The notes under the pieces are model-generated. The model saw only the letters and a program-made list of their open reading frames with translations, was not told the DNA's origin and searched no databases. Below, one piece after another: positions 34,157 through 60,612 of a stretch of DNA of 64,000 bases. Positions within the stretch are counted from its first letter, which is position 1; each line of letters starts with the position of its first letter. A program made the position numbers and the translations under genes. The stretch comes from Antechinus flavipes (taxonomy: Eukaryota): contig NC_067401.1 of the NCBI RefSeq assembly GCF_016432865.1, positions 348,812,001-348,876,000 of the forward strand, written 5' to 3'.

Positions 34157-34335
34157 GGAAGTTTGGCGAGCATTAGTAGCACTTGTACAGAAGTGGGCAG
34201 TTTTGACAATGCTAATGTCACTGGAGAAATACTATTTGCCCTTCAGTATGACTTTAAGGTTTCCACATTAGAAATCTGCATCCAAGCCTGTAGGAACCTA
34301 GCCTTTGGAGAAGAAAAGAAGAAAAAATGCAATCC
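34157..34335 (+). CDS. SYTL3: SYTL3 exon, start of C2A (GSLASISSTCTEVGSFDNANVTGEILFALQYDFKVSTLEICIQACRNLAFGEEKKKKCNP)
   Basis: ttctag acceptor and gtaagt donor; 179 nt, phase 0 to 2; classic Slp C2A start (NVTGEI.FA..Y, LEICI.AC.NLA.GEEKKKKCNP). Confidence 0.96.
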
Positions 34336-37782: not shown

Positions 37783-37885
37783 CTATATAAAGACCTATCT
37801 GCTACCTGATAAGGGCTCTCAGGCCAAGAGGAAGACAAGTATCAAAAAGAACACTGTGAATCCTCTCTTTCATGAGACTCTGAAG
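37783..37885 (+). CDS. SYTL3: SYTL3 C2A exon (YIKTYLLPDKGSQAKRKTSIKKNTVNPLFHETLK)
   Basis: Pyrimidine tract with cccag acceptor and gtacag donor; 103 nt, phase 2 to 0; C2 core motif Y.KTYLLPD and polybasic KRKT..KK.T.NP.F.ETLK. Confidence 0.96.
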
Positions 37886-40705: not shown

Positions 40706-40876
40706 TACCCTGTGGAGTATTCCCAGCTGCAGACCCGGCTGCTCCAGGTCTCCGTGTGGCACTTAGGAACGCTCACCAGGAAAGTGTTTCTGGGAGAAGT
40801 TTTGATTCCTCTGGCTTCTTGGAACTTTGAAGATAGTGTATCCCATTCATTCCACTGGTATCAGCTCAAAGCTAAG
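40706..40876 (+). CDS. SYTL3: SYTL3 last C2A exon (YPVEYSQLQTRLLQVSVWHLGTLTRKVFLGEVLIPLASWNFEDSVSHSFHWYQLKAK)
   Basis: ttttcag acceptor and gtgatc donor; 171 nt, phase 0 to 0; QVSVWHLGTL.R.VFLGEV.IPLA.W.FED is diagnostic of SYTL3. This is the last intact SYTL3 exon found. Confidence 0.96.
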
Positions 40877-43449: not shown

Positions 43450-44160
43450 TCTTTCACAGAATCAAAGAACTGCAGAATCTCAGAGTTGGAAGAGATCTCG
43501 GAAGCCATCTAGTGCAACTTTTACCTAAAGAACATCCTCTCAAAATACAAACTGCAAGTGTTTGTCCCGCCTTGCTTGAAGTGCTCCAGGGATGGAGGGA
43601 GCCATTCCACCAAGATCTCCCCCCTCAATCCCAGCCATTTCTACCTTGATATTGTGCTGTTGGCTGGGAATTTTTTCCCTAACATCAAGCCTAAATCAGG
43701 CTTTCTGCATCTTGTGTCCAGTGTCTATAATTCTGCTCTTTCAGGTCAAATAGGACAAGTAACAGCCTTCTGATCCTCAAAGATAGCTACCACGTCTTCC
43801 CTGCCCTCTCTGGTTAAACATTTCTGGATCCTCCAAATGACCTTTATGTGTATGGTCTTACTGCCTTTCATCATCCTGGTTATTCTCTTCTGGATGCACC
43901 TGTTAATGTCCTTAAAATGTATGGCCCCCAAATGAACACAGTGTTCCCAGGAGGGGCTGAACAGGACAGAGTCCATATGATCACATTTGCTTTTTTTGGC
44001 TGCAGTATCATACTGTTGATGTATATTGACCTTGCAGCCTATCAAGTCCTACCTCCCCCCAAGTCTTTTTCTGATAAACTACTATCTCCTACCTTATCCT
44101 TGTAAATGATATATTTTTTAAAATCCATAGTACACATTTGTTCTTGTTCAGTTTCATCTT
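43450..44160 (-). mobile_element. L3/CR1 LINE 3' fragment
   Basis: ORF 43746-44045 (SVLFSPSWEHCVHLGAIHFKDINRCIQKRITRMMKG) matches CR1 ORF2 [21 protein letters not shown]...QRRATRM. Confidence 0.85.
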
Positions 44161-47100
44161 AATACGATCCACACTTTTGTTCTCAACACTGACTCAATCG
44201 GTGGGCATCTCAGATTTCTTTCCACACCCCCTGGAGTAGTTTCTAGCACCATGTCATCTTGATAGTTAGCATCTAAAGAATGTCCTGATGCTTCTAAATA
44301 CACAACTCCACCACCACAAAAGTGCCAGCAATTTTCTCCTAGCCCAACCCCTGATGTACAGCTGTTCTGCCTTCCAATATGAGTGATGAGCCTGGAGAGA
44401 AGTTTTGGGGAGAGTCTTCAAGAGTAATCAAATTCATGGCTAATCCCACATTCTTGCTTTGGCCATCAATCCCTTTCATTCACCAACAATTCCATCAGCA
44501 CTGGAAAAATGTTAACATTATTGTTTTGATCTAATCTTTCTCTTTGACCCTTTGTTCCTTCTACCAGAGCGGCTACATAGCTACAGCATGGCAGATATTA
44601 GGTAGTTAGAAGAGAAATTGGAGAACTGGATAATCTATAAGCTCTATTTGTGTTTTGAGTAATCAAGATTTGACTTTTCTTTTGATGAGGGAGGGGAAGG
44701 AGTACTACCCTTCTTCTAAACAAAGATACTGGTAGCAAGGTAAATCAAACTGGCATTTTTTCTCCCCACCCAGAATTTTATGATCCTGGGCCGGTAGTCA
44801 GGTGGCAATTTCCAAAGCTGATTAAAACATTGGCAAACATGATCCAGTAGCACTGGGCAAGGACAGTCATCTTAAAGCAGCCAAGCATGTCAGCTATAGT
44901 CATGAATTTCTTTCAAGCAATAAATACCTAATGAAAGTCCTTTAGTCAATATTTCTCAAGGACCTGTGAAATATTAGAGGAACTCAAAAGGTACATCACA
45001 TACTAATTATGTATGTATTTTAATGTGCCAAATCTCTCTTATTGCCCTGTCAAGCAATAAGCTTAGAGAGCCTTATCCTCAAACTGATCAAAAAGTACTA
45101 GTTTTATTATAAAGAAAACAACTTTGAAAGACATGACAACTCTGATGCAACAGCTAAAAGTCTAGAAGACAAATGATGCAAATCATCCACCACTTGACAG
45201 AGAGATGAAAGACTCAAGATGGCAAATAGACATATTTTTGGACCCAGCCAACTTAAGAATTTGTTTGCTTGATTATATATTTATTATAGATGGCTTTTTT
45301 CTTTTTTCCAGGCATGGAACAGTGAAAAAAAGAAAAGGAAATAAAGAAATAAAAAGATAGAAAGAAGGAAAGAAAAAAGGAAAGAAAAGAGGGAAGGGAA
45401 AAAAAGGAAGGAAGGAAGAAAAGGGGGCCAAGAGAGATTTTTGAAAAAAATGTAGAGAAGAGAATGAAGGCCCGAACAGTACAGTTGAGCAGAACAGCTT
45501 TGAAAACCAGTCTTTACTTTTTATATACTTAAAGAAAAACAAGCTCTATACAATAGAAATCTTCAGTTTCATGTATAATCCTCTTTTTCTGTTCTATGAT
45601 GTGTTTAGAAATGCCCATTTTATTTGGTGTTAAGTTCAGAATAAAAGTCTACCCTTTCATCTACGAAGTCTTTTTGAATACCAGTTGTAAAATTGTTTCT
45701 TCCTCAGCTGATCATTCTAAATGCCTCTTCCACATTCATCATGTTCTAATTTATAATGTGCATATCATAGTTTCTCTACTAGTTTATAAGCTCACTCCTT
45801 GAGAGGAGATATCTTATTTATTTCTATATCCTTTTCCCTTTCTCGGCATAGTACCTTGCATATAATAATCATTTAAGAAGCAGGACAAGGCCACAAGTGT
45901 TTATTAAGCACTATATTCTGTAACTGGCATTATGCAAAGCACTGGGAATACAAATATTAGGGAAATGAAAGATAGTTCCTGCCCTCAAGAAATTTTCATT
46001 CTAATGGGAAAAGACAATACACAAAAGGGAGTTAAATGAAAAGGGGATTGGAGGAATGAAGGTTAACTAGAGTTTTGAAGTCCAGAAAGTCAAAAGCATG
46101 GTTGGGAGGAAAATGAAGGTTGACCAATCAAGACCCTTCTTCAAAATGGAGGTCCTGATATGGACCCCAGCCTTTAAAGTGGGTTCTGCATTTTCCCAAA
46201 TTGATCACTAACTGACTGACTGATGGAATGAATGAATACCCCCTCACTGACCACCAGAAAGAAAATGGCTTTTATCAATAAACAGTGCTGTAGATCTGGG
46301 ATTCAAATTGGTTCCTTTGTGAACAGTGAGAAAGATTCATGCTCTTCTAACTCTATAAGATGGCAGGAGTCTAAAGGGACTTGCTTTTTAGCTAACACTT
46401 GGCAAGGAGACTTTTGACCCAAGGTGGGGTACTTCCTCCCAGAGAGGGGGAGGGCACACTTGCTTCCTATCACAACTGCATTTCTTCTCTGTATTGACTC
46501 AACCATGTTGATCCTAATCAGTGCCTTGCCTCCTGTTCTTCTACTGACCTGTGCTGCTGGGAAGCCCCTATATCCTCCTACTGCAAGCGGAGACAACATA
46601 TATGGAGGAATAGTGGTCAAGTAAAAGTTATTTGATTTGGGAAAGCACAGGGATGATCAGTGGAACAAATGGACACTTTATTAAAAGCCCTTTCTAGAAG
46701 GGAGTGTTGATTTGATTACAGTTTTCAGAGCAAGAGATGGAAATGTGGATGGAAGAAAGGAGAGAACAGAGCAAAAGATGACTGGAATTCAGAAACATGG
46801 TCCCGGGGAGTTCAAAGCTGAAAGGCTGAGCAGGTGGAGGGGCAGGGTCTCTGGAAGCCCATTTTGGAGTACAGTGGTAGGGTGGCAGGTCATGGTAGGA
46901 GACAGCAGGAGGGAAGAGTCTCCCCTTTTTCTGGCATGACTGAATCCATAACACTGCCCCTGTACCCCAACTGTTCCTTTGTCCTGGGTAAAAAAGTAGC
47001 TAGTATAACTAGAGGTAGGGCTTCATCTACTTCTGGCTATCACAATTTCCCACTTCTAATTGAAGTCATTACTTAAAGTAGACAAATTCTGTTGAGGGAA

Positions 47101-47464
47101 AGGAGTAAGGAAGGTCACATATCCTCCAAAAATAGGAAAGGAATATGATAGGCAAAGAACCCACTTCCCCATTTTATTTAGTTTTATCTTTAGTTTCCCA
47201 GTTTAGATAGTTTCCTTTCTTCCTCCTTAACCTTTTTGCTCTCTATCCCTTACTTGGGACCTCCTTGGCTTGCTTATAAATGCATTCAAGGCGGTCCTAT
47301 TCATGGTTTGTGATCTGATGGCTTAAATGTGGGGCCATGGAGTAGGCTCATGGATCAAGGTTTCCAGGAATATTCTTAGATGTTAAGGAGGAAGGACAGG
47401 ATGCTGCTTATTTGTTAGGAAAAGGTCAACCTGTTTCTTAATTGCTGGAATTCTGCCCTCATTT

Positions 47465-48015
47465 CTTTTCTTTTTTAAAATTTTATTTTAATAACATAAT
47501 TTTTTCCAATTACATGTAAAGATAGTTTTTCATTTTTGTATGATTTTGAGTTCTTTTTCCCTTCTTCCTTTACCTCTTCCCTCCCCAAGATAGCAAGCAA
47601 TCTGATATGTTATACATAAACAATTGGACTAAACATATTTCCATATTAGTCATGTTGTGAAAGAAAAATCAGGATAAAAGGGGAAAATTACAAGAAAAAA
47701 ATAGTATACTTTGATCTGCATTCAGTCTACATAGTTCCTTCTCCAGATGTGGATGGCATTTTCTAGCCCAAGTCTATTGGAATCATCTTGGATCATTGTA
47801 TCACCGAGAAGAGCTAAGTAAATCATAGCTGGTCATCATACAATCTTGCTGTTACTGCGTACAGTGTTTTCCTGGTTCTGCTCACTTTACTCAGTATCAG
47901 TTTATTTAAGCCTTCCCAAGTTTTTCTCATCAGCCTTTTCATCACTTCTTATAAAACAATAGTATACCATTACATTCATATATCATAACTTATTTAGCCA
48001 TTCCTCAATTTCTAA
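47465..48015 (-). mobile_element. L1 3' fragment
   Basis: Same 3'UTR and ORF2-end motifs as the 9985 and 22190 copies. Confidence 0.85.
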
Positions 48016-48907
48016 TTGAGACTTGCAAGTACCTGAGTTCATGAATACAATTTAATAAACATTGTTTTTTGTTTTAAGGCAGCATATTATTTATTGTGGG
48101 AAAAGAATCAAATCTGAAATTGGAGACCCTTTAATATTAATATTAATAATGATAAATCTGCTATTTACTACTTCTGGTAATTTAGTCATCACTTTGTCTC
48201 TTCACTCTTCAGTTTTCTTGTTACCAAAAAGAGTTGATGATAGCTAGTGATGATGAGTATATCTTTTCAGTACTAAATATGCAAGGTACTAAAGTGGACC
48301 TGGGGTTCCAAAATGACAAATAATAAAAATAGCTAAAATCATAGCACTTGAAGTTTTACAAAGCACTTTACATGTATTATTTCACTTTATCCTCTAGCCC
48401 ACTTGGAAGTAAGTACAGTTCTTATTCCCATTTTACAGATGAAGAAACAGACAGATAGTCATTTAATGACTTGTCCAGAGTCATGCAGTCAGTGTTTGAA
48501 ACTATATTTGAATTCAAGTCTTCCTGACTCCTGGTTCAGTGTGTTACCCACCATGCCCCCAGCTGCTCTCAAAGATGTGGTTCTTACTTTTGAAACATTT
48601 AGACTCTGCCAGGAGAGTTGTCATATGTTCTAATCAATAGATTATAGAATATGATAATTGAGTTTGGATCTTTCAGAGGAAGAGATTGTTCTTAGGCAGA
48701 GGTCCCAGAGAAAGCTAAATGAAAGAAGTGGCACTTGACCAGGGTCTTTAATGGAAGGGAAGGTAAATATTTTAATATAAGGGAATTTATAATGTAATAT
48801 AATATTGTGTGGCTTTATATAATGTAACATAACAAGATATGAAACATAATAATGACGTGACATGATACAATAACACAACACAGCACAATATAATACAATA
48901 CAATTTA

Positions 48908-49110
48908 AGGCAGTCAAGTGGTACAGTGGAGAGAGTGCTGGTCCTAGAATCAGAAAGACTCATCTTCATGAGTTCAAATCTGGTCATTTCACCTGGTTTG
49001 CCTCAGTTTCCTCCTCTGTAAAATGAGCTGAATGGCAAACCATTCCAGTATCTGCTAAGAAAACCCTATAATGAAGAGTCAGACATTACTGAAAATAACT
49101 AAACAACAAA
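48908..49110 (+). mobile_element. Mar1-type CORE-SINE
   Basis: aggcagtcaagtggtacagtggagagagtgctgg head and actgaaaataactaaacaacaa tail. Confidence 0.78.
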
Positions 49111-49309
49111 AATACTATGAAATAATATGTGAATTTCAAAAGATAAATGGGGTAGGGTGCAGGAAACAGGTACAGGGAGGACCGTGCTGGATGCAAATCC
49201 CATGGGCTTTAAAGAACTAATTATTAAATTTTCTCTGTGAGCTTTTACATCTCAGAAATTTATCACAATTATTTATGTTGGATTGTATCATTTATTTATT
49301 TTGTTAGGC

Positions 49310-52140
49310 ATTTTCCAATGACATTTTCAAAATTTTATTTATTTAAAACTTAAATACAAAATAGAAAACAAAAAACCCCACCACTGTCATGTGCACAGCA
49401 GAATATTAGAAAGGATTCAAAATATACAGCAATAAATTTCCATTTCAAGAAATCCTGTATAATAAATACTACACAATTGTATTCAGAGTCTTTTCTTTGC
49501 TTCCATATAAGTTTTCTTTTGTTCTCTGATGTGTACTTTTTTCCTTTATTCTACCTCCTCCCAAAAGGCTACAATTAAGCATGCATATGTTTATACATAC
49601 ACACATGTACATTAATATACACATGTGGACATGTATAAAAATATTGTATATAGATATCTATGATCATATATACACATTCATATACACCTATGTAAGACCA
49701 TGCTATGTTTGTCCTCTGTTTCTCTGAAGGTTCCTTTTCCTTTGTAAATTCAAGTCCTTCCATATTTTTCTAAATCCACAAATTCATAGTTTCCTACATC
49801 ATAGTAATATTTCGATGTTATACTCTCTAGTTATTTTAAATAGTCTAAACATATTGATTAATATGGTTGACATATAGTGTAACCTCCCTATTTTTCTCTT
49901 TTGATTAAAATACATTTTAGCTTTGTCTGAGATCATGCTTATTACTCCCGCTTTTTTTAACCTAATAAATTGCACTCCTGATCTTTATTATGTTTCTGTG
50001 TATTTCTTATTTCCTATCCCTCATGATCCCTCTGCTTTACTTCTACCAACTATTAATCCACTCCCTCTCCAAGGATCTCTCCCTTATCCTCTCAGCCCAC
50101 TCTTTCCCTTTGCCTTATTGTTTTTATCTGAATTTAGAATACTTTTATAGCCTTCCAAGTATATGTGTTGTTCCTTCTTTATCCTATTCCCATTAATCTA
50201 TACACTTTTCTATGCTTCTGTCTTATCCTATTCTTTCACCTTCTTATTTCTTTATAAATTTAAAAGACTTTTATTCCCTTTAAAATGTATGTGTTGTTCT
50301 CTCTTTAACCCTGTTTCTTTTCTCTCTTGAAGCCTCATCCTCTCCCATCCCCTTAACATCATATTTTTTCTGAATTTAGAAGACTTTTACACACATCTGT
50401 GTAAATATATATGTACTGTATGTTATTGTATATATGTATTGTATGTTATATATGTTAGTACATACACATATGTATTGTTTCCTCTTTTAATCCATTCCTT
50501 AGGAGTAGAATTTCAGAACTACCAGCTCTCCTCCTTCTAATTCTTGTGTGCCAGTTGTTCCTCTTGCACCTCATTTGTATAATTAATCTTTTTAGCTTTT
50601 TCTGCAGTAATACTTTTTAGAAACACATTATATTCAGCTCTGTCCCAATCTTTCTTTAGAACTATGTAATTCCTAATAACAATCTTAGACTTACAGTTTA
50701 TATTTCCACATTTAAAAAGTAAACAGTTTATTTTGAGTCTTTGATATTTAGCTTATATTTCTCTTTGATTTTATGTGCCAAATTTTCTGTTAAGTTCAGG
50801 TGTTTTTGCAACAAAATCTTGAAAATCTGACAATTCATTGAAAGTCCTTTTTTCCCTTCAGATTATGTTTAACTGCTGGGTATAATATTTTTAACCATGA
50901 CATTAATTCTTTTGCTTCTCAATATATAGTGTTTTCAGACCTGTGTTGTTTTAGTGTTGTAATGTTAGATTTTGTGTGATTCTAAATATGGCTCCACTAT
51001 ATTTAAATTTTTTTTCCTTGTTGCTTGAAATATTTTCTCCCTGAGCTGTGGTTTCAGAATTTGGCTATGATATTCTTGTAGGTTTTCTTTGTAAGAATTT
51101 TTTTTGGTAGTGACTATTGGATTTTTTTTCTGTTTCTATTTTCCCCCTCTTATTCTAACTCTTCAGGACAATTTAAAAAATTATTTCTTATATTATTGTA
51201 TCAAGATTCTTTTTTTGATCACAGTTCTCAGGTAATCTGATTATTCTTATGTTTTTTCCTTCTTGATCTGTTTTCCAGATCAGTTATTCTTCTTCTTAGA
51301 TGCTTTACATTCTGTTCTATTTTTTTCATTCTTTATATTAAAAAAATATTTATTGGTCTCTTAACTTCATTGGCTTCCCCTTGCCCAATTCCAATTTTCA
51401 AGGAGTTGTTTTCTTCCTTAAGACTTTGGATCTCTTTTTCCAGTTACTTGTCTTTCTTTTTATAATTTTCTTATTTTTCTTGGATTGTATTTAATTTTTT
51501 AAAAATGCATTTGATTTTTAAAGTCTTTTTGAAATTCTTCTATGAACTTCTTTGAGCAGGTGATCATTTGATGTTACTCTTTGGAGTATGAGACACTTTT
51601 CTTACTTCAGTATCCTCCTCTGAAGATGAATCCTCATCTTTATTCACATAATAACTTTCAAAGGTTGGGGTTTTTCTCCTTTGCTTATTATTATTTTTTT
51701 AAATAGGAGCTTGTTATTGTAATTACCTCTGGTCCTGAGGTATGGGGGATAGTGTCATTCTTCAGTTCTCTTCAGGCTGCAACAGGAACTGACAACTCAA
51801 CCCTCCTGTACGTGCCCACAGAAGCATCTGTGCCTCACATACTGTAAGTATGTGCTGGTTCCTTCTTGCCCGAAGCAGTATCTCAGTAGCACTTATCAGC
51901 AGTCCCTTATCAGCAGAGGTTTCCCCAATTTTCCTCTCAGAAGAGGGACTCCCCACATTGTTTACAAAGTGAAAATTCCCGTGACTGCCGTAGAAGCTAC
52001 CTCCTAACCCAGCTAGCTCCAGGGCTATGAACTAGCCTGGAGCTAGTCAGGAGTTCACATTGGCCAAATCTCTGTTCTGTAATTTTTCTTTGGATCTTCT
52101 CAGTCCCAGGAATACTACTGTCCTACCCTAACTCTTGTTT
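49310..52140 (-). mobile_element. Old L1 remnant (3' end, ORF1 region, 5'UTR)
   Basis: T-rich degenerate similarity to the ORF1 region at 23700-24430 (ttggctatgatattcttgtagg, ttcttgatctgttttccagatcagtt); GC-richer 5'UTR-like end. Confidence 0.7.
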
Positions 52141-55100
52141 ATTTTACATGTCATTATACAGTAAATTGAATGCAAGTCCTCCTGATTTTGAGTCCAATAT
52201 AGTGTGAGATAAAGCGAAAAGGCATTGGACTCATTTTGTTGAGGACCTTGAATGTTATGGGGAATCAAGATGAATAAATCAATAGATTGACAAATAGATG
52301 GATGTATAGAGATCAGTAGGACATTTCCTATGTCCTAGGAAATGTGTATTGTTAAGAATACAAATACAAACCAAAAGAAACAGTTCCTGCCTTCGAAGAA
52401 CTTATATTCTAGAGAGTGAAGAAACACATAAAAAGGGAGTTGAATATTTTTTTAAATAGGGGAGGGAAGAAAGAGTGGAACAAAGAATGAAGGAGACCCT
52501 TCCTCGTGGAGCTGTTTGACCTAAGTCATGAGACCAGAGGGAGTGATGCCCTGAAAGGTCTTGTGTCAACCATTGCTCTGATAGGAATTCTAGGTCTCTG
52601 CTTTATTATCTGTAAAATGAAAGCTTTAACAGTTTGTGAGTCTATGACATTCAAGGTCTATTAGAACTTCATGGAAGCTCAGGCTTACTTGATAAGAGTT
52701 GGATGAGCCTTCCTTTGTGCCTTTCTGTGGGATCTCCGTTTCCTTCTCTGTAAAACCAAGGAGGCAGACTAGAAGCAGCCAGTGAATAGAGAATTAGTCT
52801 CAGAATCGCAGACTAGAAGCAGCCAGTGAATAGAAAGAACATTAGGCTCAGAGTCAGGAATCTGGCTTCAGAAACTTGCTAGTTATGTAGTCTTAGATAA
52901 ATCATTTAATCTCTATCTGTCTCAGTTGCCTCGTCATAAAAATAGAGATAATACTAACCTACCTCCCAGGGTTTTTGTAAGGATAAAATGAGATAATATT
53001 TGTAAAGCATCATAGAAATGCTAGCTACTATTATTATTAAATGATCTCTCAAATCCCTTTCAGGTCTAACATACTTTGAGGTTTTGGTGGGGTGGGGTTA
53101 GTTTCAAGAAACTGGTTGCTATAAACATTTATATACTATTCCCTAGTAATCAGGGATGTGTGAAAACACAATTAATTATTCCTGATAACTAGCTATTTAG
53201 AGCTGTTTAAATAGGAAGCTAATAGCCCTCTTCCTCTGCTTAGGAGGACAGAGGTGGGCAGCATCCCTAACAATGACCTTGTCTCTGACCCCATGCATGA
53301 GTTTCTCCTCCTCCCCTCTCCTGACTGTTCATCTGTGATGTTTGCTCCAGATATAAAAATGCTGATTTACTACTCTGTCAAAAATGGAGTGGTCAATCCA
53401 ATTACACAAGTATCCTAGCATAGGAGCACTTAGCAGCACTTAAAAAGCCAACAGGAAATTTTTTTGATCGATTTGAAATGAAACCTCTGAAGGATCCAGA
53501 CAAGATAGAGTAGGTAGGGAGAGACCAATGTGGACCACCATGTCCAGGAAGGCTTCCCGGAAGGTAGACCTCAGACTGGAGCCCTTGAGGGTGGGCAAGG
53601 GCTGGAGAGAGCTCAGCAGGGAGGAGAAAAGCTGAGTGCTCCTGGTGCCAGAGATCCTGAATTGACAGATACCAATCACACTTTAGTCTGAGTCACCCGG
53701 AGAAGTTTTTAGCCTCAGCCTGGAATGATGAGTGTGGGGAGTGCAGAAAGCAGAAGTGTGTGTGTAGGGGTCCAAAGCCCCTTCCTCCATACTTTTGAGG
53801 AACAGCATCGCCTTTGGGGACCCTTCTGTTCTTCTCCTGGAAAGCCAGCTGAACTTTTTGGAAACCATAAATCCAGGCTTATTTCAAAGGCAGGAAATTA
53901 CTGAGTGGCAAGTGAATTGTGCCCTCCCAGAAAGGACCATGGTGCCATTTAGTCCAGTCTATACCTTCCCAAGAATTCCTCTATCATAGACCCAGCAAGT
54001 GATCATAAAATCTCTGCCAAGGAAACACTTTGGGAGCACTCTCCTAGTCGGTGATTTTCCCCTTCTGTCAAACCCCAATCTTCCCAGTGCTTTCCATCCC
54101 TTCTCTCCGGCTCTCTTTTTTAAGGTCTAGCAGACATGTCTAAGCCCTCTTTTCCAAGTTTGTCGTTCAGTCACAGCTGTGTCTTCACGACCCCATTTGG
54201 GGTTTTCTAAGCAAAGGTACCGGAAATACTACCTTCTGAGGCAAACAGGGCTAAATGACTTGCTCAAACACATGAGGCTGGATTTAAATGCAAGAAGATG
54301 AGTTTTCCTTACTCCAGACCCAGCACTCTATCCACTGTACCTCAAACTGCTCAAACGACAGCCCTTTAAATGCTTTCAGGTAACTACCATAATTTGAGCA
54401 AATTGCTTGGAGAATACATATATATACACACACATGCACATACTGCTTGTGTCCTGTGCCATCTGAGATAATATATACACATTTATAAATGTGTGTATAT
54501 ATAGAAATATTTGTGTTTATACGTGTGTGTATATATATATATACACATACATATACACCCAAAATATATATGTATATGTACACACACATAAATNNNNNNN
54601 NNNNNNNNNNNNNNNNNNNNNNNNNNNNNNNNNNNNNNNNNNNNNNNNNNNNNNNNNNNNNNNNNNNNNNNNNNNNNNNNNNNNNNNNNNNNNNNNNNNN
54701 NNNNNNNNNNNNNNNNNNNNNNNNNNNNNNNNNNNNNNNNNNNNNNNNNNNCTATTTGGTTAAAATGATTTACTCATAAGAAGGGGAAGAAAGCTTTTGT
54801 TCTGGTCAGAATTTCAATTAATTGAATTTTTTTTTTCAAGTTTTACTAAGTGGAGGTTTCCTCTTGTTGCACTTACTGGAAACTTTCTTTTTTGTAGTTT
54901 GGGGGAGGAGGGAGGAACCTTTTTGTCTGTGACTTAAACAAAGATGGGCAGTTGGGGCTTTATCACTGGTTGCTGCCCTAAGTCCCCAAGTGGCTGGGAT
55001 TTTAAAATTTCACTTACAGATAACTCTTTTTGTAGCAAAGCTGAAAAAGAGTTTTATTTTAGTCCATGAATGCAATCCTAATGGAACATGAAAAAGAAAT

Positions 55101-55797
55101 AAAATGATGTTACAGGTTCTTAATGAATTCTAATTGTAAAGGCACAACTGCCTTTTCCTTCCCCTAATTAATGCCTATATTAATTTAAACATTTTTCACC
55201 TTTAGATTCAACAATTTCAAGATCAAGATTTACTGGTAGATATTGAACTTTTAAAATAAAAATGTGATTCTTAGTTTTCCCATTTACAGATAACTCTTAA
55301 TGGTTTCAAAGTTAGATGAAGAATTTTGAGGAAGAGTCAGATGATAAAAGTATCTCTCTTTACTTTGAAATATCTTTTATTAAAAACAAGAAAGGTTTGC
55401 TCTTCCTTGGGTTAAGTGCACAGGCTATGGAGTGGAAGGATAGAACTTTGGAGATCTCTTCCTGCCTAAGGATTCTACAGTGATCAATGGCATGAATTAT
55501 ATAATCTCAAGGTCTGGGTTATGAGGAGGACTAAGGGGGCAAAATAAGGGAAATTTGATCAGGTTAGACCAGTAATGCTGGCTGACAATGTGCAAGGTAG
55601 CGGTGAAGGGCCCTGAGTAATGGCAGGCTCTTGCAGCTAGCTAAGGGCTTCTGCTATTGTTAGAACCAGAAGAGCTCAAAGCTCACTCGAAACTCATATG
55701 ATAGCCAGGATTTTAAAGACCTTTCTGAGTCTTTCTTACTGCTTGTCTCTTAAAGCCTCTTGAGAAGTAGGGATCGCTACTATATTGTAGATAGTGT

Positions 55798-55990
55798 CAG
55801 GGGTCCTAAAACTATGGGCCTGTGGGCCAGATGTAGCAGCTGAGGACATTTATCCCCCTCATCCAGGGCTATGAAGTTTTTTTATTTAAAGGTCCACAAA
55901 ACAAAGTTTTTGTTTTTACTATAGTCCGGCCCTCCAACAGTCTGAGGGACAGTGAACTGGCCCCCTATTTAAAAAGTTTGAGGATCCCTA
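55798..55990 (+). mobile_element. Non-autonomous hAT MITE, OC1-like, 193 bp
   Basis: TIRs CAGGGGTCCTAAAACT and AGTTTGAGGATCCCTA (13/16 complementary); a 43-nt stretch is identical to the 30281 copy; 8-bp TSD not clearly preserved. Confidence 0.85.
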
Positions 55991-56211
55991 GTAGGTATTC
56001 AATAACTGTTCAATTGAATGGAAGATACCTATTAGCCAAGGAGCTTCATTATTGGTGAAGTTTTCTCTATTGTTCTGGATTTGGGAATACAAGAACTCTG
56101 ACAATGTTCAAATCTGCCCCTTTTATAATTTTTATTTTTTAATGTATTTGTTTATTTATAATTTGTTTTTCTCTTGCAATGAATAGGTTCTATTTGGTCA
56201 GTCCGGCCTTC

Positions 56212-56317
56212 CTCCTGAAATTGGAAGACAGAGACCTCTCAAGTCATAGAGATCAGCAGCTAGAATCTTGTATCACCACGAATGTCAGTCACGGCAATAT
56301 TCTGCATCCTCTTGAAG
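56212..56317 (+). pseudogene. SYTL3: Probable decayed SYTL3 C2A-C2B linker exon (AEKYEDSVPQSNGEL-type)
   Basis: AAATTGGAAGACAGAGACCTCTCAAGTCATAGAGAT resembles the recalled human AAATACGAAGACAGCGTTCCTCAGAGTAATGGAGAG. It ends in GAAG at the expected distance, but there is no AG at the expected acceptor and ttcatg sits where the GT donor should be. Confidence 0.45.
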
Positions 56318-57157
56318 TTCATGTATCAATGTATCTGAAATACATGCTAGCAATGAGACTATGGAGAATTCACAGAAATTCAATGGAATAAGGAAGTCTC
56401 CCTCTTAGCTTTGATGAGGAAGAGAGGTAAGGGAATGGCCTTGTATGAGCAAAATTTGGGTTTTTGCCTCAGTTTGTGGCTAAGCCCTGTCCTAGGAGGT
56501 CACTCATTCTCAAAAAAAACTTCAACAACTTCCCTCTAGGGTTATCTATAAACTCCAGCTAACTTTTTAAAGCCCTTCCCAATCTATTTCTTTATCTCTA
56601 GCCTCATTTTCATTACTTTCCCCAAGAAGAAACACTATTCGTTTCAAGGGAGCTCAGGAAAGATGGTACCTATTTAACATTTTGAAGGAAGGAGGGTTTC
56701 AGTGAAAAAGGAATGCATTTTACCTTGCTCTCTGTCCTCCACACACTACACCATCTCTAGTTTTGAAATCACTAGTCTTCTGTCCCAAATTAACTTGTCT
56801 TCATATCTATTTTGTACATATCTAAAATATGCTGTTTCCTATTAGAATGAAAACTCTTTGAGAGTAGGGATGGATTGATTCCTTGTATTTTATCCTTGGT
56901 ACCTGAGACAAAGCAGCTACCCAATAAATGCTCGTTGACTGGCTGAATATTTTGATAAGTGTGGCCCAGTACTTTCGCAAGCATTCCCTCCCCTCCCAGG
57001 CTTGCCTTGACAGTAAAATTAATGATACTTGGCATTCCATCCCATGCACCCTGGGCAAGGTTGATTATCTCCAAAGCTGAAGTAAAAACATCAACCGTAA
57101 ATGCTGAATTGTCAAATCCCAACGGCAAGATCTCCTTGGTTAGCTCTGCTCCAGCAG

Positions 57158-57267
57158 GGCGCCCTGTGGGAGGGTAATGAACAGCTCAGAAGGAACCAGA
57201 CTGAAGCATGTGTCCAGAGAGCCAAATGGATCTTTAATCTCCCATGAAAGAGAATTTGTCTCTAAGG
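57158..57267 (+). pseudogene. SYTL3: Possible decayed first C2B exon (GQL...GAKNL...PDGTLNSFVKG-type)
   Basis: ctccagcag acceptor-like sequence, then fragments EQLR / GTR / PNGSLIS / FV.K in the expected order. It needs indels to align and has no GT donor (aagg|ataaat). Confidence 0.35.
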
Positions 57268-57533
57268 ATAAATCTAGATTAGGACGGGAGGTCGAGTAAC
57301 AGGTTTAATGAGATCACATTATAGTCCCTTGCTGAACACAAGTTCTGTAAGATTTTCATTCTAGTTCACATGGCTCGACAACCTCTTTCATAATGGACTT
57401 AGTAATATATTTAAATGTTTCCTGTTTTGCAATAAGGAACAACTGCCTACACATAGGACTAGGGAGGGGAGGCGGCTTGATCCCCTGTTATATCTTAGCA
57501 CTGAGTGTTTGATGGTTTCCCTGACACCATCAG

Positions 57534-57780
57534 TTGCCTTGTTGGGGTGGGGAGTGGGGCTGGAGGAAAAATCGTCTCATCCTTCAACACCAAAAAAATT
57601 AAAACTGAAATATCCAGTTGTGAAAAAGTAAATCTGCCCACATTGGGCAGAGACACTTCTTTGTTCTCAATGGCGTGACCCACTTCTTAGCTGAAGCAAT
57701 GGATGAACTATCTGGGATACACCATGTTGGGATTATTTCAGTGTAAATGAATCTTTTTGAAAGGATCAAAATATGAATAC
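57534..57780 (+). pseudogene. SYTL3: Decayed main C2B exon of SYTL3
   Basis: Reads RLILQHQK/LKLKYPVVKK*ICPHW/HFFVLNGVT/S*LKQ/TIWD...FSVNE/FLKGSK against human CLTLPDQQKLRLKSPVLRKQACPQWKHSFVFSGVTPAQLRQSSLELTVWD...FGMND.LLGGTR. TAA at 57629-57631 and TAG at 57688-57690 both fall at Gln positions; several frameshifts. Confidence 0.88.
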
Positions 57781-59114
57781 TTCACACAGCTTAAGCAAGA
57801 ATGTCCTCTCCTTGTTACTGTCCATAACTACATTTAAAAAAAAAATCTTTCAACCTTTCTGAGACTGTTTTTTCATCTGTGAAATAAAATAATGGTATTT
57901 AGTAGGGCTTTCTGAGGGTCAAATTAGATAATGTAAAATATAAAGCACTTTGCAAATCTTAAAGATGTCATTATTAGTAACAATAATAATAATTTAAAAA
58001 ATACTTCCTCAATAGTAGGTTACTTAATTTGCTTCTAGGGTATTTAGAAATGGTTATTGCAAAGCTTAATACCTATTACTAAGGGATAATACATTAAGGT
58101 ATTTAAACAATTTAAATTACTCTAATCTTCTAAAGGAAAAAAATCTTAATATTGAAAAACCCCAAACCAACTCTGATCTAACTTTGAGCTAAAATATTGG
58201 CTTTTTGTTTTAGCGGCTGGCTATTAAAGGATTACTTTAAAAAAAAAAAAGAAAAAGAATCCACTCCTTTTTTCAACTCAAATAAAACAAAGATAGCCTA
58301 GATAAATGTCATTAAATGGAAATTAAAATCTACTTTTTAAAAAAGAAAGCTATTCCATAGAAGTATGTGTCCTCCTATTAAAGGAAATGGTCCCAATTTA
58401 CATTCAGCCTCAGGGTCTCCCGTTTCTTCTTCCCTTCTCCTCTTCATGAAGAATCAACCAATGCACTAACATTTTTGTTCTTCTCCTTTCCTATCAACTT
58501 TTTTTGTATGTAATGAGTCACCTAAACCTTGAGCTTCTTTTATGGAGAAGTGATTGCTAAAGACTCAGTACTGAATTTGGGAGTCCTTCCTATTCCTTAA
58601 TGTAAGTAGTTAATGCCTGCATATGTGATACTTCAAATGAAACTTTTCTTGGACAAGACCTATTATTTTATTGGTATACAGAAATAGTGAGGAAACTCCT
58701 TCTACTGATGTAGATCTGCTGATACTGGAGGAGTCATACATAGAGAGCTGGCAAGGATTGTAGAGCCCACAAAATCCAACTCTCCCATTTTACAGATGGG
58801 GAAACTGAGGCCCAGAGAAGGAAAGTTATAGGATTGTGGATTTGTAGCTAGAAGGGATCACCAAAATCATGGGCCCATCTCCCACCATTTTTCAAATAAG
58901 TGACATGCCCAGCAAATGACAGAGTTAGAGACTTGAACCCATATTTTTTTGACTCTGGGGTCAGCTCTCTATCCACCAACACCATACTGCTTTTTAGCTA
59001 TATAACTTCATAATGATCAAGAAAGGTTCACTGGAAAAAGGCTAAAAGGAAAATAAAATTAAACCTTTCTCGCCACATTCTGCCAATATCAACTTTTTTT
59101 TCTTCAAAATTTAG

Positions 59115-59232
59115 AATCAGGCAGCTGGGGGGAAAGGGGGGGGGAGGAGAGGCTTAGACTTATTCTCACAATCAAAATTTATGTCCAAAAGTTCTTTCCA
59201 TGTCAAAATTATGGACAATGATATTAAAGTAA
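59115..59232 (+). pseudogene. SYTL3: Decayed terminal coding exon of SYTL3
   Basis: tttag acceptor; SQSK then frameshift, then KVLSMSKLWTMILK* (59188-59232) against human SQSKLQWQKVLSSPNLWTDMTLVLH*. G-run expansion at the 5' end. Confidence 0.8.
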
Positions 59233-60612
59233 ACCACCACTTGGTAAAGACAAATACATTTATTTTTTTAAAAAAACCTGGGGATTGCATTCTTGCAAGA
59301 AGCTAAAAGTCAGGTGCATCCCCAAAATTCCAAGTGGCAGCATAATACCTCTCAACACATTTACTTTCTCAAGTATAAATGTGAAAAATCACCAACTCCT
59401 GCTGCAGGAGAGGAACTAATTTTCATAATCTTTTTTTGTAAATATTTAACTTAAGCCGGCCAGTCACTGTTGAGAGTGAAAAGAATGCTATCATAGAAAT
59501 AAGGTTCAAGTCACTGACCTCTTCTTCACAGGCAAGATGCTTACTTACCCTGTAGTAGTAAAAAGCCCATTGGGAAGTAGTTCAATTATCACTAAGTGTC
59601 CACAAAACATTCTGTGATGTCACTAGTAATATGTCCAAATACATAAAATGACAGACGCCCAAGGTAATTTTTATTATGAACATTTGGAGGGAAATTTTTT
59701 TTTCTGAATATTTAATTTATAGTTCTGCACCATGGATGTTTTTTTGTAGGGGAAATTTTTCTTACTCTTTGTCCCCAAACATCATTAAGCACTGATGAGC
59801 CATTCATTTTCACTTTCAAGTTCATGTAATGTTAATAACATATGCTGTCCAGAAATGCACTACAGCTGGTCTCCTGTCCTATTTTCTGAATCTGCATTAC
59901 AGCAGAACCAATTACATATTTTAAATAATTAATAATAACTAGCTTTTATATAGTCCTTACTAGTGCCAAACACTTTTTAGTTATTATCTCATTTGCTCTT
60001 CACAACCACCTTGGGAGGTAAGAACTGTTAATATCCCCATTTTACAGATGAGAAAAACCGAGGCAAACAGAGTTAAATTGATTTGTCCAGGATCACAGCA
60101 TCAGCAAGTGTCTAATGTTGCACTGGAACTCAAGTTTTCCTGATTCTTGGTCAAGCACTCTATCCATTGTACCCACCTAGCTGCTGCCCCCTAATAATAA
60201 TCATAATTTTAAAGAGTGCAAATTCAAAGATATGTGATTATATCTGGGGATTCATTATTTCACTATTTTACTAATTGAGACTTAGTTATAATTAACAGCT
60301 AGACAAATGTGAAATGGGCAAGCTCAGGAAGCAATGGGTCACCCATCACTGGAGGCAAGGATTGAGGAAATCCTTTGTTGGGTGGCTAGCAGAAGGAAGT
60401 CTTTTGTAGTACAGGCGGGATGAGATGGTCATTGAGTGGATGTCCCTTCCACCTCTAAAATCCCTGAGATATACACACATCACAACCTAGCTCAATCCAG
60501 TTGCTAACGGCTTCCGAGTAGTTTATGAAAACCACAGTCAATAAAAGGGATTCCCCGGCCCCCCAACATGTAATCAAACATCAAATGCTCTGCAACATCA
60601 TCTTGAAGATAT

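Follow-up and report, generated by a model that had tools for sequence, protein, structure and literature searches.

Slp3, the product of SYTL3, is a Rab27 partner that acts in granule secretion. Members of the Slp family are usually defined by a tandem C2 layout, in which a Slp homology domain is combined with C2A and C2B domains, and the Slac2 proteins, which are encoded by separate genes, carry the Slp homology domain and no C2 domains. In full-length SYTL3, for which exon limits were mapped on the paddlefish (L001) and desman (L002) loci, the last C2A exon is followed by a linker exon, a first C2B exon (encoding ...GQLCLVVLGAKNLP...SFVKG), a main C2B exon (CLTLPD...DRLLGGxxLG) that supplies most of the second C2 domain, and a last exon (...QWQKVLSSPNLWTDMTLILH). 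The resulting protein comprises about 610 to 620 residues in eutherians, birds, and reptiles. Functionally, Slp3 couples Rab27 to kinesin-1 in mast-cell degranulation (PMC5084650), and its C2A domain is a reported calcium-dependent lipid binder (Fukuda 2002, in the citation given by PMC10369986).

We analyzed a 64-kb stretch of DNA from Antechinus flavipes, hereafter the window, by tblastn with SYTL3 orthologs that had been found by using the last C2A exon as the query. Exons were searched and aligned individually, all comparator loci are non-human, and positions 58777–58830 were masked in part of the searches. SYTL3 lies on the + strand of the window (Table 1). The translations of its exons and its C-terminal tail are identical to the A. 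flavipes SYTL3 model P0273 and differ from those of Sminthopsis and Sarcophilus at diagnostic residues, in agreement with the dasyurid origin supposed in the initial annotation. A C2A exon yields a Pfam C2 match at 4.6e-05, and the C2A exons align with those of the desman at 70 to 78% identity with no gaps. The second C2 domain is represented by a sole C2B-related tblastn match in the window, at 57593–57796, with the strand and exon order expected for SYTL3. The main C2B relic aligns with the desman exon at 57 to 59% identity with 8 to 10 gaps, 5 to 7 of which are not multiples of three.

Homology of this segment to the main C2B exon was assessed by protein-to-DNA local alignment permitting frameshifts (BLOSUM62, gap 11/1, frameshift 10). 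At 57567–57777, five orthologs (otter, elephant seal, owl, paddlefish, and another eutherian) yield scores of 77 to 89 with their C2B segments, whereas the highest-scoring other 400-base block, on either strand of the whole window, reaches 42 to 59 and the median is 27 to 28. With six exon-limited queries, the real scores are 52 to 87 (z of 7–16), and none of the 400 shuffles per query (200 of the DNA that preserve dinucleotides and 200 of each protein; mean 25, SD 4, maximum 48) reaches them. Several elements of the full-length exon can still be recognized in the relic, including KLKLK.PV.KK, CP.W, FV.NGV, and T(V/I)WD. Because shuffled sequences never attain the score, the identification of a C2B exon made in an initial annotation from sequence inspection stands.

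A chance resemblance might be entertained because Pfam finds no C2 match in any open piece of the relic at E values up to 10, the pieces being short and decayed, and because single tblastn matches have E values of only about 0.01. Nevertheless, this explanation has almost no likelihood when set against the shuffled controls, the absence of any other block in the window with a score near that of the relic, and the score of 111 obtained by the bilby copy in the same frameshift-aware alignment. Synteny argues likewise, as the relic, on the strand of the intact C2A exons, lies 3′ of them and 1.4 kb 5′ of a relic of the last exon, and the bilby and Gracilinanus loci have its ortholog at the equivalent position.

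The segment is no longer an open exon with intact borders. All three frames are interrupted, and every alignment path needs at least three to four frame changes and crosses the TAA codon. Moreover, the relic lacks both an AG acceptor and a GT donor at the homologous borders. The initial annotation was correct that the donor has been lost, but the site is the dinucleotide directly after 57746, now AT, rather than a position near 57780, where the exon had been taken to end. This end was misplaced about 33 bases downstream because the 27-base deletion was missed, along with the single-base insertion and the first-codon change. We also considered an extension of homology past 57746 (FLKGSKYE versus FLGGAKLG) and rejected it, as these bases correspond to intron, lying 3′ of the better-kept exon ends in Gracilinanus and bilby.

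Table 1. Coordinates of SYTL3 exons, relics, and lesions (window positions unless a comparator locus is named).
Feature	Position	Strand	Basis or remark
SYTL3 upstream exons	2609–2659, 5843–6046, 16473–16613, 27572–27718	+	tblastn of orthologs
Three C2A exons, open	34157–34335, 37784–37885, 40706–40876	+	tblastn; Pfam and PDB matches
Last C2A exon	40706–40876	+	Open, conserved; final exon in common with full-length SYTL3
Terminal coding exon in use	43461–43529	+	22-residue tail 43461–43526, stop 43527–43529; end of model P0273
G-rich insert	~57541–57566	+	Between old pyrimidine tract/acceptor and exon; window, bilby, and Gracilinanus; absent in desman
Main C2B exon relic	57573–57746	+	174 bases versus 207 in desman; frameshift-aware and DNA alignments
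First codon CGT	57573–57575	+	TGT/TGC (Cys) elsewhere
A7 run	57592–57598	+	One base short versus desman, platypus, and paddlefish; one assembly
TAA on Gln codon of KKQACPQW	57629–57631	+	Platypus CAA, desman CAG; window lineage only; one assembly
Four extra bases, frameshift	57647–57650	+	After Trp codon TGG (57644–57646); in all three marsupials but not in platypus, desman, or paddlefish
One extra base, frameshift	57679–57681	+	In GVTP codons; surrounding 19 bases identical in all three marsupials
TAG on Gln codon of AQL(R/H)Q	57688–57690	+	Desman CAG; window, bilby, and Gracilinanus
8-base deletion	57699–57707	+	Between LKQ and TIWD; all three marsupials
27-base deletion junction	57728/57729	+	Codons for ~...FGVNDRLL... 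gone; window only, one assembly; kept in bilby and Gracilinanus
Former donor GT	57747–57748	+	Desman GTGAGT; AT in window and bilby, AC in Gracilinanus
Probable last coding exon relic	59120–59245	+	PKVLSMSKLWT versus QKVLSSPNLWT; at least two frameshifts
Main C2B exon, intact comparators	desman L002:11909–12115; paddlefish L001:28208–28417		

Individual lesions were identified by aligning the DNA with the exons of desman, paddlefish, and platypus and by a four-way alignment with bilby and Gracilinanus; note that part of the list depends on the alignment path chosen. Two stops on former glutamine codons, the one-base loss in the A-run, the roughly four extra bases after the tryptophan codon, the roughly eight bases missing before TIWD, and the G-rich stretch after the acceptor had all been noticed in the initial annotation, and each is present in these alignments. 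Absent from that list were the single extra base near the GVTP codons, the 27-base deletion, the TGT-to-CGT change in the first codon, and the loss of the AG directly 5′ of the exon, which has disappeared in both the window and bilby (the window has AAT in place of CAG or TAG before the first codon).

The DNA alignments place the TAG codon in frame, as does one of the two near-equal protein paths, and the in-frame reading is supported by the codons that follow it (CTG AAG CAA versus CTG CAC CAG). At the position of the TAA, bilby has AAC, and Gracilinanus has a three-base gap together with its own TAG two codons upstream. The length of the A-run differs in every marsupial compared (+7 in bilby and +6 in Gracilinanus). 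A GT dinucleotide is present four bases upstream of the former donor, within former codons. A tandem duplication of 14 to 15 bases that would generate two copies of T(I/M)WD was considered and rejected, because the second copy is the remnant of ...RLLGG... that was left by the 27-base deletion.

The relics used for this comparison come from the 10-kb flanks 3′ of the bilby (L005) and Gracilinanus (L003) genes; the koala flank ends about 2 kb before the relic, and the lesion comparison covers Antechinus, bilby, and Gracilinanus. Common to Dasyuromorphia, Peramelemorphia (bilby), and Didelphimorphia (Gracilinanus) are the G-rich insert, the four-base and one-base insertions, the TAG, the 8-base deletion, and the loss of the donor. 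Private to the window lineage, as represented by one assembly, are the TAA, the 27-base deletion, and the short A-run. All three marsupial relics are broken, each partly in its own way.

Given that the same lesions are found in three independent assemblies, they are not assembly errors, and this recurrence is stronger evidence than the reads of a single species would be. A homopolymer lesion such as that in the A-run would, by itself, be compatible with sequencing or assembly errors in an intact exon. As an account of the relic, however, such errors are barely conceivable, given the recurrence of the lesions across the three assemblies, a divergence from orthologs that far exceeds that of the C2A exons, and the omission of the exon from the RefSeq models of the listed marsupials. 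The earlier proposal that the decay is real and old, with only the A-run lesion resembling a sequencing slip, is borne out by the five or six lesions that recur base for base in bilby and Gracilinanus.

The shared lesions arose before American and Australian marsupials separated. As judged from the alignments, the main C2B exon was already dead in the last ancestor shared by all living marsupials, and loss of the C2B domain is pan-marsupial rather than dasyurid. By published estimates, this ancestor is some 70 to 90 million years old. We attempted to date the decay with Jukes–Cantor distances, but the excess over the C2A exons was 0.26 to 0.32 relative to desman and only 0.06 relative to paddlefish. 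These values were unusable, and the age consequently rests on the shared lesions. Recent, dasyurid-specific decay is what the TAA, the 27-base deletion, and the short A-run would suggest if they were viewed in isolation, as they are seen only in the window. This alternative is extremely improbable, because the window shares six lesions with Peramelemorphia and Didelphimorphia and because the SYTL3 models from four marsupial orders are short. The exon thus began to decay far earlier than would be implied by the suggestion to seek the first inactivating mutation among related dasyurids. Likewise, because the TAA is not shared by bilby and Gracilinanus, it is a late event on an already dead exon and no candidate for the first lesion.

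Marsupial SYTL3 protein models were found with a profile of platypus SYTL3 and the window exons, in which each exon formed its own row. They comprise 455 residues in Antechinus, Sarcophilus, koala, Petaurus, and Gracilinanus, 454 in bilby, 448 in Sminthopsis, and 456 in Monodelphis. Among the marsupial models listed, all stop after C2A, and seven carry a 22-residue tail of fixed length, which in Antechinus is NQRTAESQSWKRSRKPSSATFT. The N-terminal Rab-binding domain PF02318 is present in these models (precomputed Pfam), with its exons lying outside the window or at its start, and the C2B exon is absent from every one of them. The marsupial protein, then, has C2A and lacks C2B. The loss of C2B accounts for the 155 to 160 residues by which the marsupial models are short, which is a matter of biology and not an annotation gap.

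The exon that encodes the tail is the terminal coding exon in use. It is preceded by a CAG acceptor with a conserved pyrimidine tract, lies about 2.6 kb 3′ of C2A and 14 kb 5′ of the relic, and is kept in Gracilinanus (L003:96686–96862), koala (L004:87928–88097), and bilby (L005:91771–91937). Two origins for this exon were considered. Derivation from a dispersed repeat is a lead at most, for which two weak extra copies in the Gracilinanus locus (L003:16833–16881 and 64603–64640) can be cited and against which stands the absence of extra copies in the window. Derivation from the former linker exon, translated in a different frame, draws weak support from an alignment. About 1 kb 3′ of the tail exon, the interval 44531–44945 is conserved at 72 to 83% and may be 3′ UTR.

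We propose that the relic is very probably the dead main C2B exon of SYTL3, freed after the new terminal exon took over. On the marsupial stem, the gene would have come to end at this new exon directly after C2A, the exons 3′ of the new stop would have gone untranslated and begun to drift, and the main C2B and last exons would persist as relics about 14 kb beyond the present stop. As the simplest sequence of events, we infer that the terminal-exon switch, rather than a lesion inside the exon, released the C2B exon from selection; equally, one of the shared lesions could have come first and the short form been fixed later. The relic is presumed to have no function now, although it may be included in some rare transcript.

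The remaining exons of the lost C2B region are consistent with this proposal. A probable relic of the last coding exon (Table 1) scores 59 versus a window-wide 99th percentile of 34 for one ortholog, and 38 to 48 for the others, and a pyrimidine tract and AG sites are still present 5′ of it. The linker exon and the first C2B exon were not detectable in window positions 43600–57500, an interval that includes a run of N at 54594–54751, nor in three other marsupial loci. To judge from these searches, both exons appear to have decayed past recognition in marsupials.

Another possibility is that the relic has been preserved by some non-coding role, for example in a regulatory block or a non-coding transcript, and has not merely escaped erasure. 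Its core (57640–57727) has 91% identity with bilby, compared with 68 to 72% for most alignable intron, and 80% with Gracilinanus, and the relic adjoins a block at 56950–57445 that is about 89% identical to Gracilinanus and lacks codon periodicity. Furthermore, two RNA runs contain about 30% of the words of 57000–58300. The relic as a whole, however, is only 82% identical to bilby and 72% to Gracilinanus with 35 to 40 gap columns, which is no higher than its flanks; each lineage carries large private indels (27 bases in the window, and the changes in the A-run); and no Rfam match was found for the relic. We therefore regard a retained non-coding role as unlikely and favor the reading of the relic as a dead exon that has simply not been erased.

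The adjoining block is an observation in its own right. These roughly 500 bases just 5′ of the relic are 85 to 100% identical to bilby over 60-base segments, with indels of one to two bases. Rfam gives no match for the block, and the desman and paddlefish introns contain nothing that corresponds to it. The block probably represents a conserved non-coding element specific to marsupials. Sequencing runs labeled with nine organisms contain 29 to 98% of the sampled words of 57000–58300; the two RNA runs, at 30%, are metatranscriptomic.

In monotremes, the main C2B exon of platypus SYTL3 (L006:88880–89069) is also disabled, its last exon is likewise degraded (L006:91896–91979), and monotreme models lack a complete C2B domain. 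The platypus relic has lesions of its own, namely a TAG on a lysine codon, a one-base insertion in which the added base differs, and, at another site, a 9-base deletion. It does not have the marsupial four-base insertion, glutamine-to-TAG change, or 8-base deletion, and its donor (GTGAGC) is intact. Platypus and echidna models also differ from the marsupial ones in that they continue through the linker exon and the first C2B exon before ending. Because the platypus lesions differ from those of marsupials, they indicate a separate loss, independent of that of marsupials and apparently younger. In the platypus locus, the strand opposite to SYTL3 carries an ezrin-like gene 1.2 kb downstream.

Taken together, these comparisons make it likely that the C2B domain of Slp3 was lost twice in mammals, once on the marsupial stem via a new terminal exon after C2A and once independently in monotremes. 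If so, all living non-eutherian mammals use the Rab27 effector Slp3 with a single C2 domain, and the two lineages are natural experiments on the role of C2B in granule docking in cytotoxic lymphocytes and mast cells. An entire infraclass that has been without this domain since before the living orders diverged indicates that the tandem C2 layout is dispensable for Slp3, and the marsupial protein offers a natural single-C2 form for comparison with its eutherian counterpart. Our literature search found no paper on the loss of C2B from marsupial SYTL3. The fact is implicit in public databases, where the short marsupial models have long been present. As a real and ancient pseudo-exon, the relic is ordinary in kind; its worth lies in the clade-wide loss of a family-defining domain.

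In relation to the described systems, the marsupial relic corresponds to the main C2B exon of full-length SYTL3 from eutherians, birds, reptiles, frogs, and fish in gene, exon order, and strand. It differs from that exon in carrying two stops, at least four frame-breaking indels, and a 27-base deletion, and in having neither the AG nor the GT. At the level of the protein, marsupial SYTL3 resembles the Slac2 proteins in joining an N-terminal Rab27-binding domain to a reduced C-terminal membrane-binding part. Unlike Slac2, it is an Slp3 ortholog that has kept C2A and lost only C2B.
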